64,000 nucleotides of DNA, taken from Auanema rhodensis. Taxonomy: Eukaryota > Animalia > Nematoda. The notes under the pieces are model-generated. The model was not told the DNA's origin, made no database searches, and saw only the letters and a list, made by a program, of their open reading frames with translations. A program made the translations under genes and the position numbers. Location: positions 11,656,001 to 11,720,000 of the forward strand of contig OZ059897.1 of the NCBI GenBank assembly GCA_964057225.1, written 5' to 3'. Positions 2,618 through 33,200 of the stretch are shown piece by piece (positions within the stretch are counted from its first letter, which is position 1; each line of letters opens with the position of its first letter).

Positions 2618-3579
2618 TTGAATTGTCTATGATATCCAGCTGAGTAAGCTTCTTCAAAGCCAAATAATCTGTTATCAGCTCAATGTCAAAAAACAATGAG
2701 TGTATGTATGTATGTAATCCTTTACAATAATTTATATTTTTTGATTGAATATGATGAAGAAAAAACCGTTTGGTGTGTATCTCTGATCTATAAATTATTT
2801 GAGAAAATATTGAAATAGTGTTAGTGTTGTCAAACCTTCAAAACCAAAATATACTAATATATAAATTGAAGTTCCACAGATTATTGCAGATTTTCCAGTT
2901 ATCCTGGTGCAAAAAAAGGTTTTTTTTCTTTTTTTTTTCGAATGAAAAGATATAGATGGATAGATGTATATAGTATATAGTATATATATATAATAAAAAA
3001 CTGGCTTTATGAAGAATAAATAAATGTTTTTGAAATGTTCCGTCGTCCGGTTGAAAGGATAGTTCTATTATCTTGTACGAGATATGAGAGAACATTGATA
3101 CAAGGATAGTACAGAAAATCAAGGACAATTGATCAATTCACCTAATTTCATTACATTTTTTTATTCTTAAAAGTTTTTTTTATTAATTTTAATAATAAAT
3201 TTTATTTTCAAATTTTGTTTTTGTATATAATTCAAATAATTATATTATATCTATTGTTATTATATAAATTTTAATCAAAAAATTAATTTAATAAACAGGA
3301 ATAAACAAATATTTATATATATTTTGAATATTTTTTAAAACAAATATAAAATTTTATTTTTAAAAATAATAAAATAGAAATTTAAAATTAAATTGAAGTA
3401 AATTCATCCATATAAGTCATATATATGTAGATAGAATGGATGTATTGATCATATGTCAACATTGAATTGAAAAGAGAAAAAACCTTACTGGAACATATCA
3501 ACTAACGAATCAATTTAGGTAGAAAATCATCGAAATTTCTTCTTTTTTTTTTGGTTTAAAAAGAAAAATATATTGTCTG

Positions 3580-6500
3580 TTATGATCTAAAATAATAAAG
3601 AACTGAAAATACGATCATAAATGTTATAGATTTAGTTCCAGAATATATGAACATAGTTAATAGAAGGGATAGTATTAGAACAAGTTGGAAAATCAGAAAG
3701 TAAATTAACGGATGACCAAAAATTAACTCAAATGATGGCCTGGTAGAGACTTCGCCAACTGAAACAGGATTCATTCCGCGATGTACTCGCTTAAATGTAT
3801 CTGAAGTTGAAATTGAATAATAAAATTTTATTTTCAATAAACAGATGTAACCTAAAATATGTTTTCTAGCTCCATTCCATTTATGTGGTCCAACAAGACG
3901 ATAATGTGATGGTGTTACAGGTCCCCAATACAGCTATAACATATGAAATATTAAAAAGAAAAGAAAATATAAATTATATGCTTATATAAAAAGATTATTC
4001 CTCTTTTTTTTTATAAATTTCAATATTTTAAGCTTTGTTTTATCTTTTTTAAAAAAAAAAAGAAAGATCTATTCCGGTATATATGGACTACAGAATGTCA
4101 GGATTCATGCTTAATCGCATCAGTGAAGCCAACATTGTCTGGCGATCAACAGCAGGTTTTTTTTTGTGAAACCTCGAAACTTCTACATGCGGTTTTGTTT
4201 CAAAATTCATTTTTCTATATAAATAAAGTTAATATAAAGATAATAATTAATTCTTAAATATATATTATATTTTATATTTAAATCTATAAATAATAAATTT
4301 ATAATTATATTTATTAAATATTACCATATATGCTAATTGTGGATCTTGTATGAATTTAATTGAAGGAATACATCCAATAATTGATGCTAATTGATCCATA
4401 TAATGAATGAAAGGAACCTATAAATAGCCTCATATCATGATTATCAAAGGTTAAAGCTCAATACTTGAAGAGAAGCTTTTCTTGCGGAGCATTTGAACAT
4501 ACTACAAATTTTTCTTTTTTCTTCTGAAAATTTAAGTTTTCTTCAACAACTTTTTGATTAAATTCAGTACGAAACCTTGAATACATTCAATCATTTCTGT
4601 TCGACTTGGAAGTTTAACACGATTTGCCCATATATGAGCACACATTCTACTTTGCATTTCACTTACAGTTGTTGTCGGCCCCATGGGATCAATCAATCCA
4701 ATAATCTATAGAAGAAAAATTATTTTTTTTATTTTTTTAAAAGAAAAAAAATTATTTTTGAAGTCTTACACCTAATGTATGATGTTTGTCGTCTGGTGAG
4801 AATATTCTTAAGTACAGGCTTAATTGATTATCGTCAACTTCAATGAATGGTTTATCATTCTCACGAATAAAATCAAAATCAAAGTTGAATCCTGTGCAGA
4901 ATATGATATCATCAATATGCTGAAATTGATTATTCGTCATTTATAGCTTTATAGCTTTATAGCTTTATAGTATACTATATATAATAGTTAATGAGCACCT
5001 CTTCAATATCATTGCTATAGACGACTGAATTACTTTCAAATCTATTGATTCCATTACGAATTTTTATATATCCACTATAATTGAATTGTATTTTGAAGAA
5101 TTTTCTCATTTCCTTTAGTTATTTTCAATACCTGCTCAGATGAAGAGGAAGATCATCAGCTAATAGAACTGGACTTTGACCTGGTAGCTCCGTAGGTTGT
5201 AGCCCGTATAACGAATGATCAAAAAAGTTTGTATAATCTCTATTTGTGACAAATCTCTTGACAGCATCTATAAAATGTAATATTTTAATTAAATCTCAAT
5301 CAGAACATGGAAACATCTGCTTTTCTTCTCCACCCACCACCACCACTCCTCTCTCTCTCTCTCTTCTTTCTTCTCTCTTTCATTCGTTTTTTTTTCTTTT
5401 TTCTCAATCTATTTGTTTCAAAAGGTCATTTGAACCACTTTTTTCTTGCTAATTTCCGTTGTTAAATTTAAAAAAAACTTTTTTTTTGTTTTTAATATGT
5501 CCTTCAGTTCATATACATGTGTTCAAACCCGTTACATCTAAATATAACGTTTAATCAAAAAGCTTTATCAGGGAATATCCTAGCTTTAAGATTTAAAATA
5601 CGTGATTTTTAGGAAGTTGGAAATCCTTCCTGCTTCTCTAACAAGTATAGATTTGCGGACATGAGACCATTGGGTCCTTCTCGACTCAAAAGTCTCCGCC
5701 TCTGGATTTAGCTGTTTCAGTTGAAATGCACGTAGGCCAACATGAATAGGATTCTTTTAATCTCTGACCAATTCTCTAGTTCTCACTGACTTATGTCTTG
5801 CAGAACATTTTCCATTTTGAACTTATAACTTTTTATTGATTTTTATATGTTAGCATGTACATATATATATATATATATATTATACATAAATATATAAAAT
5901 ACTTGTTTTACTTACTTGGGGAAATTTTTTGGATATGATCCATAAATCTGCTTCTAGTTACATCTCGAGGATAACCTTGTTTCACAACTCTACGAGTTAC
6001 CCATGTTCCATGTCTAGTCGATACATAGACCTATAACACTCATTGTATTACTATTATTGAGCATATAGCATGTTGCTTATCAGCTACCTGCTTAGCAGTT
6101 CTTGCCAATTCGCATGCTATATCACCTCCGCTGTTTCCCAAACCAACAATTAGAACATTTCGATTATAGAAACGTTGAGAAGTCTAAAAAGGCTTATTTG
6201 AAGGCAAATCTTCTAATGGACTCTCTATTTGATGCAATATTGATTAAGCTCTTTTGCCAGTTCTAGGTCAACTAAAGAAACAGCAGATGTTGCTGAACAG
6301 TTGGCTTATCAAACTCTCTATGTACTTATTGGCCACGTACGTGTGGTTAAACTCAATTTATTATAAGCAGAAAATTATTTTTAAAACTTGGTCGTACTTT
6401 GCATTGAGAACTATGATATATTCCTCCTTTAAACTGATCTATACCAGGATAAGTTGGAATATGAGGTTTAACATGATGACCATTGCAAACCATAACATAG

Positions 6501-7092
6501 CTAAACTGCATCGTATCTCTTGTTTTAGTTCTGTAAGCATTGATAGTTTTCATTTGTTTTCTCAAAGCATCAAAAAATGAAAAAAAAAATTACAACTCGT
6601 GCTCAGTTGTCACATCCCATGTACCATCTATCTCATAAGTCTTCGATTTTTTTACCTCAAATTACACAAAATAAATTATTTAAAAACATAAAACTATGAA
6701 CTTGCTTCAATAACTGATGTATTAAATTGAATACAAAGTTTCAAATTGAAATTCTTCGAATATTCTTCAAAATATTCTTGAAGTTGATAGTTTGGTAGAA
6801 AGTTTGGTAAAGCATCATTTGACATAGGAAAATCAGAAAATGTATTAAATTCTTTACTTGTATTCAGAATTGTTTTTCTCATAACAGTTGATGGAACTAA
6901 AATATGAAATTATTAGATGAAATTCATTCAGTTCTGAAAGAATTATCAACCTTCTTCAGAGAAATTCCATAATCCACCAATTATTTCATTTCGTTTCTCA
7001 TAACAAATAACATCAAACCCATATTCTTTTAAATTTTTGATAGCTGACAAGCCAGCAGACCCAGCACCTATTACACAAGCTTTTTTTGGCAT
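3580..7092 (-). CDS. fmo: Flavin-containing monooxygenase (class B FMO), multi-exon
   Basis: FAD motif MPKKACVIGAGSAGL; GGLWN; NTSKE..FSDFP; CNGHH; FMO fingerprint FKGGIYHSSQCK; NADPH motif VGLGNSGGDIA; IIFCTGF; SEMQSR; WGPVTPSHYRLVGPHKWNGA; hydrophobic C-terminal anchor ending at 3580. Confidence 0.93.
6334..6343. promoter_or_regulatory. Palindromic double HRE-like element (CACGTACGTG) in an fmo intron
   Basis: Perfect 10-bp palindrome with TACGTG on both strands; another GCACGTA at 5728-5734 in the larger intron. Motif match only. Confidence 0.35.
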
Positions 7093-8329
7093 ATTATAAA
7101 CTCCTATCTAAATCATATAAATAAATAAAACGAAAAAAAAAAGATTACAAAAGACTAAAAAACAACAAAAAATCCTTTAAATTCGTATAATAATTTGCAG
7201 AAAGAATGAAAGAAAAATAGAAAAAGTTGGTTTATTTGCAGCATTTACTGAATTTTGAACCGATAATTCTTCAGAATATACATTTTATCTAATGTCACAT
7301 CTATAAATGAAATCAATTATTAGTGATAACGACTAGTCTTCAGCGTAATAAATCTTTGATTGTCAAAAAATGTTTTTTATCCTTATCACTTAGTTGAAAT
7401 AGAGGACAAGAGGAAGATATACTATATAAAGTATATATGGATATGTAATTACATCTATAACTATCTATCTATCTATCTATATCTTATACTAATTATAAGA
7501 TTTATATATATATAAATAGATTAACATATAATTAATTATTAAAATAGATATAAGTAAAAGATTTTTTATTTATTTTTCATTCTAATACTGTATACTATAC
7601 TATCTTGCTTCGTTTTCTTTCCTTTTTTTCCCTCATCATCACCTCTTCTCTATTGATATTAACTATAATTCTATAATCTCTATACAACTCTTTATAATAT
7701 TTTGGACCTAATATGAAGCTAATATTCATTTAATCTGATGAAAATCACAAGTACTGATAAAAATTGTATTGATGATATATACATATTAGGTATTTGAAAA
7801 ATAGATTACAAGTTGTCAAAAAAAAAGAAGAAGAAGAAGAAGAAGTTTTTATTCTTTACATTTGACATCTTATCAAATTAACTCTCTTGGATATATTTAC
7901 TGTAATATATATTGGTGTGTAATAATTATATTTTTAGAAATCAAAAGAGATATTTGAATAATTTTAGTATTATTAACATAATCTATATAATATTCCTTCA
8001 TCTCTTTCTCTTTTATTCTTTTTTTTTCAATCTACTTACTTCGAAAGGTCATCTAAATCACTTGATTAGCTTTCAAATATGTATTCTATTTGATGTTAAT
8101 CCTATACACTCGTTCCCTTTACTACTCAGAGAACGGTCATTTCTTTTGTTTCAAACTCTCGTGATCTCTTCTCTTTTCCTTGAAAATGAAGTGACCTTAC
8201 ATGTCCCGCCTACCAAAATAACAGGATGGGTGCAACATTCAACGTATGTTAGTAGTATGTAATCTAGTACATTTGATTGAAACATTTGCAGAATATTTCT
8301 TCTTTTCCTTTCCAAATGTTAAAACATTT

Positions 8330-8337
8330 ATTTGCAT
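8330..8337 (+). promoter_or_regulatory. Octamer element ATTTGCAT (POU/CEH-6 type) upstream of aqp-8
   Basis: ATTTGCATA about 730 bp upstream of the aqp-8 ATG. An octamer drives excretory-cell expression of C. elegans aqp-8. Confidence 0.5.
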
Positions 8338-8656
8338 ATCTCTAATAGTTGAAGTTGCTCACGGAACTTCACTCAAGTTAACAACTGTGAGTATAATGTA
8401 CTCAACAATTCATTTCATTCTTATACAACTTTTATTTATTTAAAACTAACAATATTACTATGATTTTCAAATTTATGAAAGTTATCGTATACCGTTAACT
8501 TCAAAAGAAAAAAAAATCTTATAAAGTCAATATCATTTTCGAAGTATTATTCATTTTCCTTAAATTTCAGAAAAAGTTTTAACTTAAAACATATATTTCA
8601 ACTTATCATCATCCATCCATCTTCTTAAATCATATATGTCCTTCTCAACTTATATG

Positions 8657-8774
8657 ATAACTTGAGAATACGATATATACAATCAACAGTCATCATAATA
8701 TCAAGTTTCAAGTTCAAAAAGCATACTTCATTAACTAATATTTCATATAATTTATTAAACAAAAACTTTTTTTG
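8657..8774 (+). repeat. 118-bp direct repeat, copy 1 (upstream of aqp-8)
   Basis: Identical to 10897-11014 except one base (g8721 vs t10961). Confidence 0.95.
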
Positions 8775-9064
8775 CTGCTTCAAAACTTGAAAGAAAAACT
8801 TTTTTACTTACTTGCTTCATCATCAAATTTAACTTTCAAAATATTTTTCTGATAATAATATTAGGAAAACAATCATTTCTTATATAGTTATCTATTTATT
8901 TATGAAGAACTATGAAGTTTGAATACTGAATTCGTACATGTGTAGATGATTTTCCTAAATATATTCTTCATTGATTAAAATAATTTTTTATTTTTAATTA
9001 TTAATTTTCTTTAATATTATATATTATTTAATGATAAATATTATGTTTTTCAAATTATTTAGGT

Positions 9065-10336
9065 ATGGCACCACTCCAGGAAAGAGCTCGCCATTGGGCA
9101 ACCAAAAACAAATTGTACAGAAATTTGGTCTCAGAATTTTTCGGAACCTTTATGCTTCTTGTAAATCATTTAAATTGCAGACATCTAAATATTTGTATTG
9201 TTTTAGTTCATCGGAACATCCATTGTTTCACAATATCATTTGGGAGCTGGAAAAACAACAGAATATGTTGGAGTAAATCTTGGATGGGGATTTAACATCA
9301 TGTTATGTGTTATGGCTACTCAAAGATTATCAGGTACATATCAGTTATAAGCAATTTCTTCTAGAATATTTTCTTTAAGGAGGTCACCTTAATCCTGGAG
9401 TTTCAATCCTTCTGTGGAGCATGGGCCATATTCCATTTACTTGGTTCCTTCTGTACTGTGTCGCTCAAGTTGCTGGAGCTTTCTGCGGTTCCGCATGCAT
9501 GTATCTCTTCTACTATCGTGAGTTTTTTTTTTAAACATTTTATCATAATACGATCAAATTACATTATTTGGAAACAAATATTACTTCACATTTGTTTAAT
9601 ATTTTCATGTTTCAGCTTTGTTTAATGCTTTCGATGGTGGAGTTCGTGCCGTTGTCGGACCAACTGGAACGGCTGCTTGCTTTGCATCTTATCCTAATGC
9701 CGTAGCTTCCGGTTCATTCGTAACTTCATTTGTCGATCAGGTACTTTTTTTGTATTCAAGTTTACAACGATATCTTATATCTATATATAGATTGTTGGAA
9801 CTGGACTTCTTTGTTATTTCCTCTGTGTTGTCATTGATGAGCGTAATCAAATTCCAAAGGTCAGTTGTGAAAAATATGAATAAAAAGATTTTTTAAACTA
9901 TATTTAACTATAAATAGTTTGTTATTCTAAAATTAAAGGAAAAACTAATTTATAAATTCAAATTTTCAGAGATGCTATCCACCAATCTTTGCTGCTCTTG
10001 TCATCATGATCGGAACCGGATTCGGATATTACCTTGGATATCCAATCAATTCAGCTCGTGATCTTGGACCACGTCTCTTCTCAGCCTTCATCTATGGAAT
10101 GGATGTTTTCAAGTAAGTATCCCTCTAAGCTGTTTTTTTAATTTTTAAAATTCTCATTTAGAACACCGAACTCTACATACTTCTTGGCTCCAATTTTCGG
10201 ACCACTCGTCGGAGGATTATTTGGTGGATGGTTCTACAACCTTACTCTTGGAATTCATAATCCTGATATTGATGAAGAAGAAAAATCAGTTAAGGAAACC
10301 AATGAAACCAAAAAGTTGCTTCAATCAGAGCCATAA
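9065..10336 (+). CDS. aqp-8: Aquaglyceroporin, AQP-8 orthologue, 7 exons
   Basis: MAPLQERAR..LYRNLVSEFFGTFMLLFIG; NLGWG; SGGHLNPGVS; GPTGTAACFASYP; VIDERNQIP; LGYPINSARDLGPRLFSAFIYG. The RD after box 2 marks a glyceroporin. Close to remembered C. elegans AQP-8 along its length. Confidence 0.92.
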
Positions 10337-10896
10337 GTATTTCTCTTTCACAGTGATCTTTAGTGGAGCAAATTTAATTAAACTTTAATTAAAGTTCTTC
10401 ATCCGAATGTTTTTTAATCAATTATTCATTTTTTATTTTTAATTTGATTATTAGATGAAAATAAAAAAAAATTTTATTATTATTATTGTTATTATTATTT
10501 TAAAAAGAAAAGTACAAAACATCACAATATACATGTTTCAAGCAGAAAAACAACTAAGCTGAAACTAAAAAAAGTTTCAAAAAAATGCTGAGTAGTTTTG
10601 GTCTTTAACTCATTTATTTTCAACTTAGAATATGGCATAAGCTTCTAACAATAAGTGGTTGGTCATAATTCACTTGAAAAATTTCATTGATATTCTAAAA
10701 TGAACCCTTTTTAAGTTTTAATAATATATTCTTTTATACCGTAATTCATCGTCATTTCTTATATTTTCTAGTTTTTAAATATATATAATAATAAATAATA
10801 ATAATAATAATTTATAAAAAAAAGGAATTTAAAATATTTATTTTATTATTTGCTTTGTAATCTCAAAAATTAAATATAGATTAAAGAATTCAATTT

Positions 10897-11014: not shown

Positions 11015-12491
11015 AAAACTTAAAGTTATAAATGAGATATAAGAATTATTAAAAATATATTATACATCTATTCATATATATCATATTCAAGATTTATATA
11101 TCATATAGTAAAGAATGTTGTTATATACATTAGTATACCAAGTAAGTATGCAGTAAATACATATTTATGATGTAAAATCAAGATTCAACATATAAAAATT
11201 TTAATATTTCTTCCGTAAAGATGTTTTCTTTCTATTTTTTATTATTAAATTGTATATGTATATTCTATATAAATATCTAACTAACTATATATAAGTTTGT
11301 ATATTTCATATTCATTATAGTATAAGATCTAATAGATTTGTATTACATATAACTAAAATATAAAGATTATTGTATATATTTATTATATTTTTATCATTTT
11401 ATCATATTATTTCTTCTTTTCTTTTCTTTTAAAGATTAAATATATTTCAAATTGATTTCTTTAAATGAATGATCTTCGATCATATAAAATTTTTCTCTTT
11501 TTTTCTCTTTAAAGAACTTAGATGTACAATGTACGGAAAATGAATGTATGGATGAATGATTCTGACATATACATGTATGTAAAACTTATAATTTTCCTTT
11601 AATATTAAAGAATCAAAAATGAATTATATGTATATCTATTTTAAGTAATATTATATAAAATAAATAAAAAAATATTTTTTCTTTTATTAAAAAATTTATA
11701 AAATTTATTATATATTTATTAATTTATATTATTATTATTATTATTATATTTAATAAATAAATTTATATAATATGTTGTGAATCTTAATTGATAATCATCA
11801 TATACATCAATATAAACTAATACTATATGTAGGATGTATGTAGATTGTATTATTGAAATTACAAAGACATAAGCTTAAGCTTATTTTTCTTCCTTTTTTT
11901 TGTGAAATTAAAAAGAAAAAAAGAATCATTTTGAATGTTAATTGAAATAATGAAATCAAATAAACTTAGTTTTTGATTGTAAATAAACAAAAAATTGAAT
12001 ATTCAGTATTAAAGATGATGAATATGCACATATCTTCAATAGAAAATGACTATTTAATAGCAAAAAATGTAGAAAATTTATTTGAAAAGAAAAAAATTGT
12101 TACAAATAATAATTTTTCATATTCAATTAAATTATTTATTTGAATATAGTTATTCTTATTTATATAAAAAGTTATTTATAATAAGATGATTCGTTAATAT
12201 TGCAAAAAAAAAGATTTTCAATTTTTGCTCTCTTAAAAGCCAAATCTATTCATATTTAAATTTCAGCTGTATTTATTTTGTATTGAATATTAAAAATTTT
12301 CTTCAAAATTGAAAAGAATTCAAATTGTGTTTATTGAAGATTCTTTAGCTCTTTTTGAATGAGTTAAAGGATAGCTTTAGAAACGAAATAACTATGACAA
12401 GCGTTTTTCTTACTTTTTTTTATTATAAATAGAAATATTGTTAATACAACTGCATGTTCATGATGTCAATAAACCTTGTTTAACTGTGTAC

Positions 12492-12526
12492 CTCTCTCTT
12501 TCTTTCTCTCTTTCTCTCTCTCTCTC

Positions 12527-12580
<54 letters not shown>
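12492..12580. repeat. (CT)n microsatellite
   Basis: Directly visible. Similar CT/GA tracts at about 1617-1706, 15876-15946, 40542-40617 and 43748-43823. Confidence 0.9.
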
Positions 12581-12971
12581 AGTCACTACTATTCTCATAA
12601 AGTTTCTATGCTTCTATCTGTATTAAGTATAAGATTCTAATATACATCTTTCCAAGTCATTTTATTTTTTTTCTCATGATATCTGCACAAATATTTTTGA
12701 GCTTTATGTCCGAAATAGTGGGCTTTTCCAACAAAATTTTCACATAAAATTCTTTCCATCAGCCAAGACATTCTTCAGAATATATAAGTTAATAAATATA
12801 CGAACATTTGAATTCAATTGTTAAATTGAAATTTTTTCATTCTTAAATTCTTCTTCAAGCAAATGTTTCATTATAGTATATTCCACGACATAAGTAACTA
12901 TTTTGAATTTTAATTTGTATATGTTTTAACTTTTTTTGTTTTTGTAAAGTTACAGCTGTTAACTTGTTTTC

Positions 12972-21936: not shown

Positions 21937-22068
21937 TTTCAACATGGCGTACTTTCATTTACAAGTAGTTCATACAGTCATTCCTTCAGTATTAGTTTGT
22001 GCTCTCTTCTGTGATCTAGTCGGATAACAGATTATCTTTATTTTAACTATCTTTTTTTTAGTTTAGTA

Positions 22069-24039
22069 ATGTCTGCTGTCGAATCTGCTTCCACCGAAAC
22101 TCCAGTGGTTGAAACTCCAGCGGTTGAAACTCCAGTGGTTGAAACCCCTGCAACAGAAACTCCAGTTGTGGAAACCCCTGCAACTGAAACTCCAGTTGTG
22201 GAAACCACAGCATCAGAAACTCCAGTTGTTGAAGCCGTTGCAACCGAAGCTCCCGCTGCTGAAACTGCTGTAGAGACAACTAAGACTACCGATGCTCCAG
22301 AAGTCGCTGTTGAATCTACTACTGAAACCACCGCTGAATCTGTTGCAACTCCAGTTGCATCTACTGATGCCACAAAGACAGAGGAAGAGACCAACACACC
22401 CGTAACAGAAGACTGTGCAGTCGCTGAGGAGACAGAGATTGTTTTAACCAAGGAAGAGTAAGTCTTATTTTTATAAGCGAACGTCATTTTCATTTTTGCA
22501 GAAAAATTACTAAAGCCAAGGAAATCTTCGTAGAAGGCAAGAAACATTATCTTGCTGGAAGTTATGATCTCGCTTCTGAAAAACTTAGCGAAGCCCTTAA
22601 GTTTGGGTATGTAATACATTAAAAAAATAATTTTTATTCTTGTCATTTTAGTGTTGAAGTATTCGGAGAATTCGGTGTCGAGAATTTCCATAACTATTAT
22701 TACTATGGAAAGTCGCTTCTCGAGGTTGGCAGAGCCGAGGACGACGTTTTGAAGACTGCTTTGAAAGATATGCCTCTCACCGAAGAAAATGCTAATGATT
22801 CAATTGATGAGGAGCAGTATGGAAATCCCGAGACTCTCTCAGGTATATTGATGAATATTTTGTTTTTTTATTCTTACAATAGCTGAAGAACGCGAGGAGA
22901 TCAAAGATCAAGTAGACGAAGCTTTGGCTGAGAACGCCAGAGATCTCGAGGTTTGACTATCGGTTTTTTTCGGTATATTTATAAAAATGTTGTTCTAAGA
23001 CTGGAAAGCCTGAAAATGCTGAGGGAACCGTAGATGCACCTGCAACTGAAACTGAAGCTACCACTGAAGTAACCACCGAGGTCACGGCTGAAACTACCAC
23101 AGAGACAGCTGAAAAGACCGCCACTGACGAAGAGCAGAAGGTCGAGGAGGCTGTTACTGAGACTAAAGAAGATGCTGAGATGGAAACTGAGGAAGGTGAA
23201 ACAGCTCCTACTGCTGAGGATGATAACATGGAGGAAGGTAGCGCTGAGGAGGACGATGAAAGTGAAGACCAACCTTCATCCATTCAGGCCGCTTGGGAAA
23301 TTCTTGAGGTGAGGTAGTTTTTTTGAGCGTTTATTTATCTATGCTATTAGGTCGCTCGCAAAATCTGTGATGCTCAGGAACCTACCAAGGACTGGGAGTT
23401 GAGCAAAGCTGATGTCTTGTTGTCTCTTGGAGAATGCTCTGTTGAAGATGAGAACTATACCCAAGCTGTTGATGATATCACTGTTGCCTTGGAGCTTTAC
23501 AAGAAGTACTTGGACACCTCTGATAGAACTATTGCCCGCACCTATGTCATTATGGCTAGAGCTTATAAGCTTAACGATGACTTCCTTGGAGCCAGCGAAC
23601 ATTACATCAAGGCTAAAGAGAGTCTCAGTTCCAGAATTGGTATATTAAGATTAATTTTTTGTCATTTGTCTATATTCATTTAGCTGCTCTTGACACCACT
23701 GAAGCTACCGAGGAGGTAAAGGCATCCAATGAGAAGGAGGTTGCCGAGTTGAAGGAGCTTGTTGCTGACATCGATCTTAAGATCGAGGATGCTAAAGAAA
23801 GTGCTCAACAGAGCGATGAGGTAATCAAGGAAATCTTGTTCATACTATGTTTACAATTTCAGAACATCGCGAGAATCAAGGAGCAGCTCGGACTTAACAC
23901 TGCCAGCGCCTTGTCAGAGAAGACTGATGCCCCAGCTGTTGATATTACTAATATGGTACGCAAAGGAGTTAAGAGAACTGCCGATAGCGCTCAAACTGAT
24001 GAATCCAAACGTCTTAAGGAAATTAACGCTGCTGAATAA
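22069..24039 (+). CDS. nasp: NASP histone H3/H4 chaperone (SHNi-TPR family)
   Basis: [22 protein letters not shown]; [10 protein letters not shown]; acidic insert; AWEILEVARKI; [23 protein letters not shown]; [15 protein letters not shown]; C-terminal [12 protein letters not shown]. Confidence 0.92.
22096..22230 (+). repeat. Coding 15-nt tandem repeat ([10 protein letters not shown] x9) in the NASP N-terminus
   Basis: GAAACTCCAGTGGTT-like units are directly visible. Confidence 0.85.
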
Positions 24040-24215: not shown

Positions 24216-27200
24216 ATGAATGATTCGGAGTCTAACAATACTGTAGAAGTAAAAATGATAAGTGCTACCACTAAAAGTGTAGATTTTGATTTTTGGGAAA
24301 GTAATGATGAAGAAATTGTAAATATATTTGTTATACGATATTTCTTAAAGAACTTTAGGGCGTTTATCGTGAACATGCTTTGCCCGATGGCTCGTGTGAA
24401 ATAGCTGTAACGAAAGGTTGTGAAGTCGTAGTATTTCAAAGAAACGGACAAATAGTTCGCAGAATCGGTGTAACATTTGAAATTGTTGATGTTAGTTTGC
24501 TCAAAAAAGCTTAGGTAACTTTGTTCAATCAGGTTTTCTGGTTTCCGTGCTCATCTCGCTTATCCGGGGAAGAACCCGGTGAAAAAGTTGATTATCTCAC
24601 TCTTGTTGGCCAAAGAGAACTAGTTTTCTATCAAACAGAAGATGATCATCCATTTTATTTCAGTTTTCCTTTTAAGGTGGAATAGCTGTAATTTTGCTTT
24701 ACTCTAGATTATTTTAGATTCGAGGAGTTTTTCCTACAACTGATTGTCTAATTATTGAACGAAGTTGGGATCACCTTGTTAACAAAAATGAAAAAAGTGA
24801 AGATTCTATATATTTATATTCTCTAACTCATCCCTTAGATGAGTTAAGACCTATTATATATCGTGATGGAGGTTAACTACTCAACTCTATCGTTTTAAAA
24901 GAATTAATTTAGATCTGACAAATTTTTATATGCTGGTTTCTTCAAATCAAGTAGTGGATTGTTTTAGTTCGTGTATTTTAATTTATGATGATAATAAGAA
25001 GGTAAAATTGGGACTGTTGAAAAGTATACGTTTTCTTGTATAGGCACATGTTTTGTATAATATTCGTAAAGCAACTTCCGATGATTGTAGAATGATATCG
25101 GGCACACCACGAATTTTACCAGATAGACATAAAATTCAACCGTCACCCAAAACCAGTACACCTGTTTCAAGAGGTAAAATTTATTAATCTTTTTTAATTC
25201 AAAAAGGCAATAGAGTAAGAGAACGACGTTGGTCAGACATATTTTTGTTGTCTACTAAACGCAACAGTTGTAAATCACTGTGAGTCAGCAAACATGCTGA
25301 ATTATTGGGTGAACTGAGCCTTCTCAAGCTTGTTATATCTTGACTAGATCGTTGTGGTCTTGCTCGGAAAATACTACGACTTCGATAATGCATAACTGGT
25401 GATGGAGTGGTAGCGCTGTTGCTGTGTGAAGATGTTGGTGCAGAATATGCTTCAAATTAGTCTAATCAAAAGCAAAAAATATTGTGCTTATCAAACCTAT
25501 AGCGGGGGATAAATTAGGTTCCAGAAAATGAGAAGTTGATCGAGATCTTGTTGAGCGCAAGGATGCCATAGAAATAATACTACTGCAAAAGTAAAAACAA
25601 TATTATATATATTTTTAAAGATTTTTCTGACTTTGTAATACTTAATCTTAATGGCGTTTTCTCGGAAGCGCATCCTTCATATCCTCGTTTCATACTTTCT
25701 ACAACCATATTCATAAATTGTCTCCAAGATTCACATAATTCTTCTTCTGTGCTTTTTTCTGCTCTTGGTCTTATCCGTAAAATTCTTTTCAATCTGAAAT
25801 ATGTAGTTGATGGAAAGATGACTTGAACATTTTTATTTTTTAATCAAAATTCTATGTGGAACTCAGTCATGCTCAAATACGGGAAGGCTTCATTCGTTTT
25901 TCGAATATACGAATTTTCTAGAATTTTTCTCATGCAACTCACTTATTATCGTTATTGACCACATGCATGTAAGTCTTCGTCATAGCAATCGGCAATTGCT
26001 GTGCAAAAGGAGCCCAGTACGAGTTATCATTTCCCTCGTTCATATAATGTCTGTATTTCATGGTTAAAAAGATTAAACAAGTGAATAGATATACCTATGG
26101 CGGCTGCCCAGCCGAAAAGCCAATGTTTTTATCATTTCGGGATCACACTTATGAACTTTGATTAAAACGTGTAAAAAATCCCTGACCTGTAAGAGTTACA
26201 TATTTATTTTTACAAAACAGCTTCATAATACCTGTTGAATCATATTTGTAAATTGTGTATTTTCCCTATATGTGGAATGCATTGTTTCCGGCAAGTCAAC
26301 TAATGCCCATACCCATGTCGGAGTCAGTTCTGCTGCTTTGAGCCAAGCGTCGCTGAAAATTTTAATCTCTACATATACTTTCTCCTTGTTTTTAAGTAAT
26401 TTTTTGGGCAACCCTACACGATAATGTGGCTAAAATCAGTGTCTATTTCGGATGAAAGAGCTGCTGCTTAGCCGATTTCCTGAAGACGCCCCCGCCGTGG
26501 CAAATGTAATTGTGACGTAACTTGACTATTGGTCCCTTCTGTTCTATATTTGTTGGAAATTATACTGTTTTAGTACGATCAGAATTCTCCCCCTACTCAA
26601 AAGATATTTTGATTATAATATCCATAATTCAAGTATTTCATGAATATGATAATTGTTATTGCCATCAAATATTGTGCAGATTTTTCAGAACTTTTTATGG
26701 AGCAATGCTACATTCACATAGTGAATCTGCTTTTCCATTGAAGATCTGTCTCAATTTTCTGTTCATAATATTGAATAACAAATTATGCGAACAAGTAGAA
26801 CTAAAAGAAACGTACATGAAAACCTTTAGTACTAATTCAAAAAAATTGGAAATAATTATTTTTTTTGTGAAAGATTAGGAATAATGATATGACCAACCTG
26901 ATTGCATTATTTAGAATATTAGGATCATAAGAGTAAATGGTGTTCCAGGACTGTATTACATGCTTGCGATGAGTAGATAGCTGTCGTGCGCTTTGATTCC
27001 CCATTTCGAATAATTATATTACTATCAACTGAAAACTGTTTTCAATAAGTATCAAAAAGCAAAGGAATTAAACAAAAGAGAAAAGTGACTAGTTGCATAC
27101 TATGCGAAAGCTTGGACCTCTTGAGTTGAGGGTAATGCTGAAAGGAATGGGAGGAGCTACTATAGGAGCTTGTTAATGTGTTGACATTGTAGGCTTATAT

Positions 27201-30200
27201 GAGGTTATGTAGTAGAATGAATGGGAAAAAGCTAAATGAAATGTCGAGGTAAAGTATAAATCTGATATAAGCAGGAAGAACTGGTTTCAAAGCTGAGGTT
27301 TCTCCAAAAACGCTACATATAACACCTGCTGCAATCCAATTCAATTCCGAGCAAGCCTAACTTAATTTAGATCTTTGTGTCATCTCGTTTCAAGTATGTT
27401 TTGCCTTATTCACTCGTGTTAACGCGCACTGAAGGGATCATTTCACTACTAGGGGATTCCTAATGAGTCTACTGTTTCTCTAATTTCCGATTAAGTATCA
27501 GATATCGGATCAAAAGTTGCAAAATAATTGAAAAAAATAATGAAAACGGGGTAAAGGTCTTGATATTTTTATGCAAATGAACAATTTTTAATCATTCCTT
27601 CTTATTCTTTACTGAAGCACACATCTGGTTAATTACAACTGCATAAAGAATCTGCAATGACTTTAAGAGGCTTAAATTGCTGTTGGTCTTTCCCCGCTAT
27701 GTCGCAGTCTTCAACGGATCAGCTATGCTCAGAATATATATGAACATTACAATTGTTCTTAAGAATTTGTTTAAAAAATGTTTCTTGAGTTTTCTAAGAG
27801 ATAATAAAATTACAAGGGAATTTTAGATCTGATTCAACAAAAAGATATAATTATGTGATATATTTACCACGATTTTAAGGCCCAATGGCCCATATCCCAC
27901 AAGGTCGCACCACCAGAAGCATGAGACGCCTTGAAAGAACTAGAAATTTTCACATGGACAGCCCAGCTTTATCAGCAATTGGAACGCCGATGTAAGGCAA
28001 ACTTCGAGTTAATAGAAAGTATAAATATTTCAGGTCACATAACAAACCATCTTTCCGAGATTCTACAATCTCTTTCCGTTTAAGAGCTGCATCCCATTAT
28101 TCTATCAATGAGTAAATAAAACGACGAAAGTCCGAAGTTAGAAATTGTATTTAGGCTTCATCTAACTAGGGTATTAGAAAGAGAATTTGATAATGATTTG
28201 CTCTATGCTGAATTCTGTTTGGAATGTGTTTGGGTTGAGCCACGTAAAGAAGAATTTACATTTCCGGCTTGCAGGGTTCAGTAAAAATCAAAAAATATAA
28301 TGCTGACATTTGTGATTTAGGCATTTCTCTCTAAGTCGTTCATAGGGCATACATATATGAACTATGTTATTCGGCTCCCCGAGGGCATCAAAGGTTCGAA
28401 GTCCCAGTTACGTTCTATCCGACTTATTGAAGTTGAGAAGTCGTATGCTATATCAGGAAACCTACATTCAATAGAATGTGTAGATGCGACAGCCATGAAG
28501 GTACGCGGAAATTTAGACTCAAGTATTATTGTATTTTGAGGACATGTGCACGTTAGTTCTTTTCAATCATCACATATCAATTCATTCGGGAATCACTAGA
28601 ACTACTGATGTTTTTATAACTGTAATTTACTTTTGGAAATTCAGTTAACAACATTGTTTATTTAAGCCAAATAATGTCAATAACACTACTCAATGGCACA
28701 GATCAACATTTTTACCTTCTGCTATTGACAACACGTTTTCCTTAGTTGTGGGGAAATCTATTTATCAACTAACCATTCCTCCCATGTATCCATGCAAAGA
28801 TGGTTAGTCCCACAACAAAATTGATATAAGTGCTTATATATTTCAGTTGAAATGCTTTTCACCACCATCTTAGAAGCTCTTCCACAAGATAAAGCTATGC
28901 GATTAGCTGGAGAGTGGCGAAGTAATTTGAGTGAATGATTGAAATAATTAAAAAAGGGACTATTTAGGTCACACTCCTATTTCATTTCAAAAAGGTTCAA
29001 ACTGTTCTAGCATTCATAACACATATCTGTTTATACTGAAAAATATCGGCTTTGATATTCCAGCTGTTATTAACCAGGGAATGGTGCTGCATTCATATTA
29101 TCTCATTATCTTTTAAACTGCATTTTAGGACTCATCTTCTGATGACTCTGATGAAACTCAAGCAAAACAAAGACGTCCTTTAAGATCAGATGAACAGGTT
29201 ATTTCCGAACAATTTTGAAAATTATTGTTGTGTTTTAGAACTGGCAACAAGTATTATCGTTTGGCTCTGATTATCAACAAATGCCGTTTCCTTCGAATAA
29301 TGTTAGGGTCGTTGTTAATTCATCAGCTCTTTTATACGCGAATGTTTACATGTAATTACTCTAAACAATATCACTAAACAATTTTAATTGTTTTCAGCAC
29401 TTTCGCAGCTCTTCATGCTCATTGGGAAAATATATCTTTAGATAGGGGTCAGAAAGGCGTTCGATCCTCATTAGTTTGTTATTTGTATTCTGTAGCAAAG
29501 TAAGAGGATCTTCGAAGTATAGTTGTCATATTTTGATTTTCAGATTGTTACAACTAGATTCGTACATAAAGCTATACGAGAAAGTTTTTCCGAAATGTAA
29601 GACTTTGAAAGTAACATCAGCTGATAACGGATCTACAGGTACAGATTATAATGCCATTTCAAAAGAGTATTTTCTAATTTTCATTACCTATTTTTAGAAT
29701 ATTTTTTAAAAAGTTTGATAAATACTTACAATTCATTAAAACAATCTTACAAGTTTTATAAATCTTTTCAGAATTCCCTACCTCTCATGGTATTCGGAAT
29801 TTCAATCCAAATAAAGCTCTTAGTATTTGGCACACTGTTGAAACTTTTATAAACGATAATCCTATTACACCACTTCCTCTTTGCACTCCATTCACTGCGA
29901 AAGTTCTGCTTGGTTAGCATTTTACTGGATTATATATAATGTAATTTTGGTTGTTTTAGCTCTTGGTATCGGGGTTGGACGAATCAAAACGTTAAATGAC
30001 ATTCAAAGGCTATTGGGAAAGAATTGGTCGAAACGTTTGAAATTCGCTTCTGAAGAACAGACTAAATTTTTGGAGAAATTCTTAAATACCCGAGAATCCG
30101 TCGCCTCGAAGTAATTCAAAGAAATGGGCTTATTTCTCTAAATCTCAGATCTTAGATGTGTCTCTACTTTGCGCTTAACTGGAATTGGCTTACGGGAGAT

Positions 30201-33200
30201 CGAAGGATTCCCATCTTTCTTGGCTTTACTACTTGGTAGTATCATTCATTCCGACCATATAGCTTTGGATGCGTTCATATGCCGGACACCAAAAATTGAA
30301 ATGTTGTTAGGGAATCAGGACCTCATTTTAAAAGCCAATTTACAGATGCTTCCCCACTGAGGAACAATTCGGCGAAATAGCAACTACAAGATGGCCAACA
30401 GATATGAGATTGAGAAATGCAATAGAAATGCTTGATAGCTCGAGACCTGTGTTGATAAACACTGATAGCTTGTAAGTTGTAAATACTTAATAAAACATGA
30501 GTACTATTTATATTTGCAGAGGGTTAGGGGATCACGATCTCAGAGATGCCCAAGAAATGTTCTTGTCGGGATCTTCTATTCGATATCTCACCCAGTCTTT
30601 AGGAAGAGCATTCATTGATTTTAGGTGAGCTTTGATATACTACGTTTAAAATACTATTTTTAGAACTGCAACTCCTTCGCCATCAACAAACATTATTGTT
30701 CCTGATCTTTGTCTTACAGCTCGACTTTTTCCTTCAAATCTGAGTTTCGAAATACCCATCAGTGATGTATCCTGAATTTTTATACAAATTCTTTTATTAT
30801 TGATTGCAGTCGTTGAGACCGTTCCGAGAATGGGGAGAATTCTATAATGGGGTTGCTGCTGCATTGAAGTTAGCTGATTCTTCTCAAGTAAAAGTTGAGG
30901 GAGAATGGATAATGGCAATATGCAACAACAATGATAAGGTTTTAAAAATTAAAATTTAGAAGTGTAATTAATTAAATAATTTTCAAGTTCTCATCTGCCA
31001 CAAAAGCTGGGCTTTTGTATGGATTTGGTTTGAACGGTCATATTGTAAATACGAACATGTTTGATGTCCATGATCTCCTAGCTGCTGTTGAAGATTTCCA
31101 GTCGGTTGCCCTTATATTGGGATACGCTGCTTCGAGAATCGGTACTAATGACAGTCGGGTCTTCCGTATGATAACCACCCAACTTCCATTCTTAATGGGA
31201 CCAACTCTTCTACCTATCATGATTACTCCATTAATTCAGGTATAACAACTTCATTATCGCGTATTTCCTGTTATATATTTTCAGACAGCATCAATCTCTG
31301 CTATTGGACTTGTTTTTGCTGAATCTGGCCATATGAATATAACTAAAAAACTTGTGAATGAAGTTCGACTTAATTGAAATTGATGTTCGATCAGAGTACT
31401 TATTTTTAGATTGGTCGATCATCTAATCCTGAAGATGTTCCATCTGTTGATCGATATGCTTATAAGTTATCAGCTGGATTCTCAGTCGGATTGATATGTT
31501 TATCACTGGGTAGGGTTTATCTCAAAGCTTCTCTTGTTATTTCATATTCAGGTAATCAAATGATGGAGACCGATCCATGTTTCCAAGAGCCTCAACCTTC
31601 TATTATCAAGCGTTTAATCACTATGATGAATGGTGGACCCAGAGTAAATAAGACTATATCTATATATAATAAGAGTTTCATCATTATAGGATTTATGTGT
31701 GTTTCCCCAGCAAAATAATTCGAACAGCGATTATGTTCATTCTGGTATGAATCAGTTCACTCCAGATCCTTCAAGTCATATTTGGGTAGAATTTGGCTAT
31801 ACTTCGTTTTTACATGTTTGATTTTGAACAGGAAAAGGAAAATATTAACACTCATCTCACCGGACATCCAGCAACTGTTGCACTTGGGTTGATGTTCCTT
31901 CAAACAAATAACACTTATATGGCTGAACTCATGAGTTTACCTCAATCCATCTCGCTGTTAGAAGGCATACGTCCAGACCTCGTACGTTTGGAATTATTTT
32001 AAAGATTCATATGTGATATCATTGTAGGTTTTAGTTAGAGTTCTTTGTCGTAGTTTAATTATGTGGGATGAAATAGGAGATACAGAAGAATGGGTTCAAT
32101 ACCAAGTATGAAAATGTTTTTGTTTCGTATGAAAGTCATATTTAGGTCCCTGATGTTGTTTCCAAATTTTTGAGTACATCATTCAAATGGTCAGAACTTG
32201 GAGAATCTAATATGAGCAAAGAAGAAGACAAATACTGGAATAATGTAGTTGATAGAGAAACATTGGCACAGGTTTGGTCTCATGGAGTAGTGCTTTTTAC
32301 TATGTCAAAATAGGTTTATTTGTATGCTGTAACTGGCGCTTGTATGGCATTGACATTCAAACATATTGCTCATCCAAGACCTCAGAAAGTGAAAGTAATA
32401 GATATTATTGTAAGAGAAGAAATTGATTTTGAAAGTTTAAAAAGGTTTTTTAGGATATTTATTTGGATATGATTGCTCCCACTCGAAAAAACAAGTTATA
32501 TACAAGATTAACACAAAGTGCTGGAAGCAACGTTGTTAGCTTATGTATGAACACATTGCTAACATGCTTAGCTTTGGTATGAATTTGATTTTGACATGTT
32601 ATTTGGACTGCAAGATTCATTTTATCATTTTTCAGTTGTCCGCTGGAGAAGGTGAATTAGAACCTCTACGACTGGCACGTCTTTGGCGTATGCAAGACAA
32701 TGTACTGTCTTGGTCAAGAAGTATCAGGAAACACCAAGAGCAACTTGCTGCTCATCAAGCTATAGGTATTCTGTTCATGGGGAAAGGAAGGTAATAGTGG
32801 CTATTATAACTTATGTTTTATGTTGATTTATAGTTGCGGATTTAAAAACGACAAATTATCTATAGCTCTTCTTTTGATCTCTTTTTATCCTGTTGTTTGT
32901 CATAACATAACTGATAATAGGTAATCATGAGATATTTATAAAATTTCAATATTTCTTCCATTTTTAGGTTTTATCATCAACCATTACGATTCTTATGGGT
33001 TAGAACTGTAGAGCAAAGGCTTCTAATTCCTGTTTGTTATCAAACCATGAAACCAATTAGATGCAATGTTAAAATTTATTTCACAAATATGAAAACTCCT
33101 CAAGAAGGAAATGGACCCCTACTTTTGCCTAATTTAGATTTTATTGATACTATAGAAATAGGAGGAAAGTAAGCTCTTGTGTGCTTTCGTTATCTTTTAT

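Follow-up and report, generated by a model that had tools for sequence, protein, structure and literature searches.

An orthologue of C. elegans glb-4, encoding a divergent predicted globin, lies antisense within the large intron of APC1 in Auanema rhodensis, as in other nematodes

The single large intron of the Auanema rhodensis APC1 gene contains, on the opposite strand, a complete gene that we identify, with a probability of about 95%, as the orthologue of C. elegans glb-4 (C09H10.8): single-copy, transcribed, composed of seven exons and encoding a divergent predicted globin of 308 amino acids. The window, i.e. the whole stretch of DNA analysed, comprises 64,000 nucleotides of contig OZ059897.1 (positions 11,656,001 to 11,720,000, forward strand), and plain coordinates refer to it. 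The initial annotation presented this as a hidden gene. It is in fact neither hidden nor new, being glb-4 in its known place: the family member was described in 2007-2008 (PMC2228317, PMC2576238) and has an annotated counterpart in Auanema sp. JU1783. C09H10.8, one of 33 C. elegans globins, measures 344 aa; it lacks a pre-A extension, continues for 120 aa past helix H, carries an insert of 22 aa between G and H and has Ile at E7, and it is up-regulated in dauers (PMC2228317). Under the number globin 4 it is recorded as expressed in the nerve cord and in neurons of the head and tail, with a Ka/Ks of 0.0115 (PMC2576238).

The list of open reading frames for the minus strand of 25199-27004 holds fragments only. 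When the sequence was read with its splice sites, a minus-strand gene running from 27004 to 25199 was obtained, with seven in-frame pieces, GT..AG borders and 308 codons. Introns 1 to 6 measure 545, 45, 44, 149, 49 and 47 nt, all of them GT..AG. The features of the nested gene are:

27005..27879, minus strand: 5' UTR and putative promoter, wholly inside the host intron and about 66% alignable to Auanema JU1783
26898..27004, minus strand: exon 1; ATG at 27004-27002, N-myristoylation-type start MGNQSAR..., helix A; joint 26352/26898 in three of four runs
26232..26352, minus strand: exon 2; helices B-C and CD region, ELTPTWVWAL motif; RNA joints on both sides
26095..26186, minus strand: exon 3; helices E-F, ending at the proximal His of LGSRH; RNA joints on both sides
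25943..26050, minus strand: exon 4; FG loop and helix G; joints 26050/26095 and 25793/25943
25632..25793, minus strand: exon 5; G-H insert and helix H, W..F...V..MKRGY; acceptor joint 25793/25943
25497..25582, minus strand: exon 6; start of the Ser/Arg-rich tail, SIISMASLRSTRSRS, a motif invariant in the alignment of orthologue tails; donor joint 25449/25497
25199..25449, minus strand: exon 7; stop codon at 25201-25199, conserved RSRSIFR, RRLSSPN and QRRSLTLLP; joint 25449/25497, and contigs over 25208-25449
25180..25185, minus strand: polyadenylation signal AATAAA, found by pattern scan and in the sequence, with no second copy in the nested gene; distance to the APC1 splice donor 6 nt

We used assembled contigs from four runs of one study as RNA evidence. 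The run type is listed as a guess, and we take all four to be RNA-derived because their contigs skip introns. CT..AC joints, equivalent to GT..AG on the minus strand, were found at 26352/26898, 26186/26232, 26050/26095, 25793/25943 and 25449/25497, corresponding to introns 1, 2, 3, 4 and 6. The joint of intron 2 was reported as 26184/26230, and moving the cut by +2 gives 26186/26232. Five of the six predicted glb-4 junctions were thus recovered in spliced contigs at the exact bases, each in one to three of the four runs. The splicing of a gene of about 308 aa at 25199-27004, which the initial annotation had done by eye, proved exact, and the junction check that it proposed was borne out for these five joints; the sixth, between exons 5 and 6 (25632/25582, intron 5), was absent among the RNA joints listed for the four runs, as was the 3' end of the gene. 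That junction is probably placed correctly, with its donor at 25631-25630 (GTCAGA), judging from the reading frame, the RLSIT-N-SII motif (present in 13 of 15 orthologues) and the identical layout in Auanema JU1783. A genome search found exons 2 and 5 each in single copy and no glb-4 paralogue.

One contig extends to 27044, which gives the nested gene a 5' UTR of 40 nt or more; no RNA contig from the four runs covers 27093-27827. At 545 nt, intron 1 (26353-26897, minus strand) is ten times the usual local size and may be regulatory. It also contains a 118-aa plus-strand open reading frame (26522-26878), which is without support. At the other end of the gene, only 6 nt separate the AATAAA (25185-25180) from the APC1 donor, and therefore the 3' end of the nested gene probably overlaps the APC1 exon in a tail-to-donor arrangement. 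The cleavage site would fall within that exon.

The host gene is represented in the window by the following features:

25042..25173, plus strand: APC1 exon before the big intron, ending ...GTPRILPDRHKIQPSPKTSTPVS; defined by RNA joints, 93% identical to the Auanema JU1783 locus
25174..27879, plus strand: APC1 intron holding the whole nested gene, 2,706 nt; GT..AG joint in four of four runs
27880..27991, plus strand: APC1 exon after the big intron; defined by RNA joints, 95% identical to the Auanema JU1783 locus
30976..31242, plus strand: open frame with an exon of the APC1 PC-repeat region, matching human ANAPC1 1172-1245 (E 2e-10) and yeast Apc1 (E 1e-5)

The joint of the host intron was reported as 25171->27878, and with the cut moved by +2 it delimits an intron of 25174-27879. 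Nine neighbouring APC1 introns, as skipped in RNA contigs, measure only 40-45 nt. Of a contig of 5,036 nt, about 3.9 kb of mRNA remains to cover about 5.4 kb of genome downstream, which would leave no room for a second large intron. These results uphold the proposal that the gene lies on the opposite strand within the sole large APC1 intron. The identity of the host was likewise confirmed: 30976-31242 holds an exon of the PC-repeat region with homology to APC1 of human and yeast, and the syntenic host genes of other nematodes carry Pfam APC1 domains. An upstream exon (24718-24867) gave a weak match to human APC1 179-225 (E 0.03-0.25). Pfam searches with ten APC1 open frames and nine RNA-defined APC1 exons yielded only a faint ANAPC1 match (PF12859). 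A six-frame scan of the genome with PF12859 gave no match; as the control genomes gave none either, this negative is uninformative. The APC1 exons that follow the intron had no match among PDB sequences.

The exon after the big intron holds DSP...GTP, and the exon before it ends with the sequence given above. This exon border lies about 75 residues past the match to human 179-225, which would put the intron near human residue 300, with the weak upstream match as the only anchor. The 300s loop of human APC1 is CDK-phosphorylated. The intron position, anchored from the upstream side only, is compatible with an interruption of this loop, the placement that the initial annotation considered plausible.

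Homology searches were run exon by exon or with full-length orthologues. Exon 5 alone (53 aa), searched against a representative library, retrieved a 304-aa C. briggsae protein at 83% identity together with several fragments. When this C. briggsae protein was used in a word search, the proteins retrieved included CBR-GLB-4, one of 344 aa from C. elegans labelled 'GLOBIN domain-containing protein' and one of 308 aa from Auanema sp. JU1783; strongylids, Pristionchus, Ascaris and Toxocara also yielded orthologues. In exon-by-exon BLAST, all exons aligned in order to GLB-4 proteins, with 35-100% identity per exon across two nematode clades. The assignment to glb-4 rests on this collinearity of every exon with GLB-4 proteins and on the single copy in the genome. 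The 304-aa C. briggsae model departs from all other orthologues after ...SPAIG (residues ~227-304) and has no match to exon 7; the last intron appears to have been mis-spliced or read through in that annotation.

In C. elegans GLB-4 the seven exon pieces are found in the same order, with 74-87% identity over the core and 44% in exon 7, and the MGNQSAR start, the RLGxRH proximal-His motif, the G-H insert and the tail motifs are shared. Its gene, too, lies antisense inside APC1, beside a SHNi-TPR gene. The C. elegans protein differs in having a tail about 36 aa longer than that of the window protein and a probable Ile at E7 instead of Met. Its gene lacks the 45-nt intron 2 of the window (26186-26232), exons 2 and 3 being contiguous at 10154-10363 of the extracted locus. 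Comparison of the two loci indicates that this intron is a gain or loss within the family.

A close relative is the 308-aa 'unnamed protein product' of Auanema sp. JU1783, with an identical layout of seven pieces. Identity is 100% in exons 2 (residues 37-76), 3 (77-106), 6 (198-225) and 7 (227-308), 97% in exon 4, within 88-97% in exon 5 and 88% in exon 1 (residues 1-35). The non-coding DNA of the two is only about 66-73% alike, so JU1783 represents a different species or a deep lineage. There, too, the globin lies between APC1 exons on the opposite strand; the annotation differs in that two gene models, of 1434 aa and 272 aa, flank it in place of a single APC1. These models occupy 3144-9085 and 11565-12644 of the extracted locus, and the 272-aa model runs into the last exon of the globin.

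The initial annotation suggested a profile search with PF00042 as one way to recognise the globin, and this search fails even on full-length orthologues. PF00042 matched no single exon at E <= 10, and Pfam searches with each exon gave chance-level matches only. The 304-aa C. briggsae protein and one other full-length orthologue likewise had no match to PF00042 at E <= 10. In a six-frame scan of the genome, PF00042 found nothing at this locus and 13 exon matches elsewhere. PDB sequence searches with exons 5 and 2, and with a profile of 15 orthologues, returned no globin. The name 'Globin family profile domain-containing' on listed orthologues derives from a profile other than PF00042. The 13 matches elsewhere in the genome represent some eight or nine loci (including C7:13993387-13993711, C6:10882683-10883231 and C1:8014526-8014945). 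Since divergent members such as glb-4 escape the PF00042 scan, the true globin count of the genome must be higher.

Because sequence profiles detect no globin, the evidence for the fold comes from structure prediction. An AlphaFold2 model was built for residues 1-200 of the Auanema JU1783 orthologue (88-100% identical per exon), in place of the joined protein of the window itself, using an alignment of 15 orthologues; it reached pLDDT 77 and pTM 0.77. The model has helices at 2-26, 29-45, 68-87, 92-109, 119-140 and 158-182. In Foldseek, the best 50 matches were all globins, with leading neuroglobin matches at TM 0.74-0.77 (by target) and C. elegans GLB-12 (PDB 4bja) at rank 40. VIA-align superposed the model on neuroglobin with Z 14.9 and an rmsd of 2.7 Å over 143 of 148 residues, and 689 of 1000 chains scored Z >= 8. 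The protein is thus predicted to have a 3-on-3 globin fold, and the globin assignment of the initial annotation holds in that the modelled core of the JU1783 orthologue superposes on neuroglobin along its full length. Vertebrate neuroglobin and cytoglobin (PDB 1q1f, 6h6c, 2dc3) resemble the model in the 3-on-3 fold across the whole domain (Z 14-15, rmsd 2.6-2.8 Å), with only 12-17% sequence identity. GLB-4 differs from them in the predicted lack of a distal His and in three additions: an insert between helices G and H, an N-terminus of lipidation type and a tail that is long and disordered.

The putative haem-pocket residues were examined in the alignment of 15 orthologues, in which the globin core shows 74% mean column identity. 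L102 (F4), G103 and H106 (F8) are invariant. The F4 Leu and F8 His fall in the model helix 92-109, and exon 3 ends ...FRLGSRH, in agreement with the proximal His (LGSRH) proposed initially. At the distal position neither His nor Gln occurs at E7, all orthologues having M/I/L at residue 73 and I/V at 74; the E7 region is Met-Ile in the window protein and Ile-Ile in C. elegans. The globin domain would span approximately residues 8-184, as a divergent 3-on-3 domain with an insert between helices G and H, and may bind haem via H106. We found no paper demonstrating haem binding by GLB-4.

Outside the globin core, the start MGNQS[AT]R occurs in 11 of 12 orthologues with a complete N-terminus and fits the N-myristoylation pattern. 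The Ser/Arg-rich tail, about 110 aa long, carries four basic-Ser motifs that are invariant in the orthologue alignment (SIISMASxRSxRSRS, RxRS, RRxS[ST]PN and RRS[LI]T). The MGNQS start may anchor the protein to membranes through myristate, and the tail may be regulated by basophilic kinases. By analogy with C. elegans globins, the gene would be expressed in neurons and the protein would have a role in signalling or redox sensing, not in oxygen carriage. C. elegans GLB-12 and GLB-26 are N-acylated globins thought to signal and not to carry oxygen. They belong to the same nematode globin radiation and share the MG start; they differ in being separate paralogues, with no sequence-level match found.

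Two other readings of the gene product were weighed. One holds that the fold was kept and haem binding lost, leaving a membrane-tethered scaffold or signalling adaptor whose working part is the conserved, phosphorylatable tail. The tail motifs are indeed among the most strictly conserved blocks, no sequence profile detects the globin, and E7 is hydrophobic (alignment; PMC2228317). However, the whole core is itself strongly constrained, at the mean column identity given above and with a Ka/Ks of 0.0115 (PMC2576238), and neither F4 Leu nor F8 His varies across clade V and the ascarids. Moreover, a hydrophobic E7 is compatible with function, as working globins of this kind exist and Glycera haemoglobin is among the structural matches. 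In Glycera haemoglobin, E7 is Leu. We consider loss of haem binding unlikely. We give next to no credence to the other reading, a decaying or non-coding antisense transcript with accidental open frames. Low contig depth and the lack of a Pfam match could be cited for it, but seven in-frame exons with canonical splice sites, 35-100% identity per exon across two nematode clades and the syntenic arrangement all speak against it, and in practice the RNA joints and the orthologues refute it. A pseudogene or an accidental open reading frame was rejected on the same grounds of splicing and conservation.

The nesting itself was found to be shared among nematodes. In the C. elegans reference (BX284602.5, chromosome II, 11.10-11.12 Mb), glb-4 lies wholly within an opposite-strand APC1 gene (mat-2) of 1815 aa, which carries the Pfam domains APC1_N, APC1_3rd_nematode, APC1_4th and APC1_C_nematodes; a SHNi-TPR gene and a complex I 51K gene are close by. 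Using tblastn with the APC1 exons of the window, we located N-terminal APC1 on one side of the globin and on the opposite strand in all four species compared (C. elegans, Auanema sp. JU1783, Pristionchus mayeri and Toxocara canis). Downstream APC1 was found on the other side of the globin by tblastn in C. elegans and Auanema JU1783, and by the Pfam APC1 domains of called genes in Pristionchus mayeri and Toxocara canis, the latter also giving a marginal tblastn match (E 0.014). The synteny check proposed initially thus places the globin inside APC1 in all four. The initial annotation had itself stated that novelty would drop if the nesting were already annotated in many species, and this is the outcome: it is in the C. 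elegans reference annotation and is common to Pristionchus and Toxocara.

As the nesting is common to clade V and ascarid nematodes, it is older than their split, and it was inherited from their common ancestor. A recent insertion into the APC1 intron was rejected by the synteny across four genera. We found no paper on the depth of this conservation across Caenorhabditis, Auanema, Pristionchus and Toxocara, and a literature search on a nested globin or mat-2 returned nothing relevant. A gene with Pfam SHNi-TPR (NASP-like) adjoins APC1 in both C. elegans and Auanema JU1783, so the synteny extends past the nested pair. In the window, TPR-like open reading frames lie just upstream of APC1 (23399-24039, plus strand). 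Further upstream, a low-complexity repeat at 22047-22691 has long open reading frames on both strands (ETPVVETPA... on plus, GVSTTGVS... on minus), and probably encodes a Thr/Pro/Val/Glu-rich repeat protein.

Passive retention accounts for the conserved nesting most simply and economically, because a gene can hardly leave the intron of an essential host without disrupting it. It might instead be that selection keeps the two genes interleaved, either because glb-4, transcribed in post-mitotic neurons, and APC1, transcribed in dividing cells, interfere with each other, or because the 3' end of glb-4 masks the APC1 donor. The persistence of the arrangement from Toxocara to Caenorhabditis is in keeping with such selection, as are the AATAAA 6 nt from the APC1 donor, with probable transcript overlap, and the neuronal expression of C. 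elegans glb-4 (PMC2576238). Yet conservation is expected under passive retention as well, as any breakpoint that freed the globin would cut the essential host. In addition, the same runs contain contigs for both transcripts, although RNA from whole animals does not distinguish individual cells. The initial annotation had suggested that the two genes could be expressed in a mutually exclusive way; the proximity of the AATAAA to the APC1 donor may bear on this idea. We regard selected antisense nesting as quite improbable. More doubtful still is its fuller form, in which a neuronal globin within the intron interrupting the N-terminal Ser/Thr-Pro-rich loop of APC1 would have been held there by functional coupling, through interference or donor masking, since before the divergence of clade V and the ascarids.

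Passive retention of glb-4 inside APC1 remains our preferred reading, and the conserved nesting could serve as a stable synteny marker. Globins of the GLB-4 type go undetected by Pfam and PDB sequence profiles, only structure revealing them, and automated annotation can split APC1 around the nested gene, as in Auanema JU1783. Were functional coupling nevertheless true, the arrangement would constitute a built-in switch between proliferating and post-mitotic cells.
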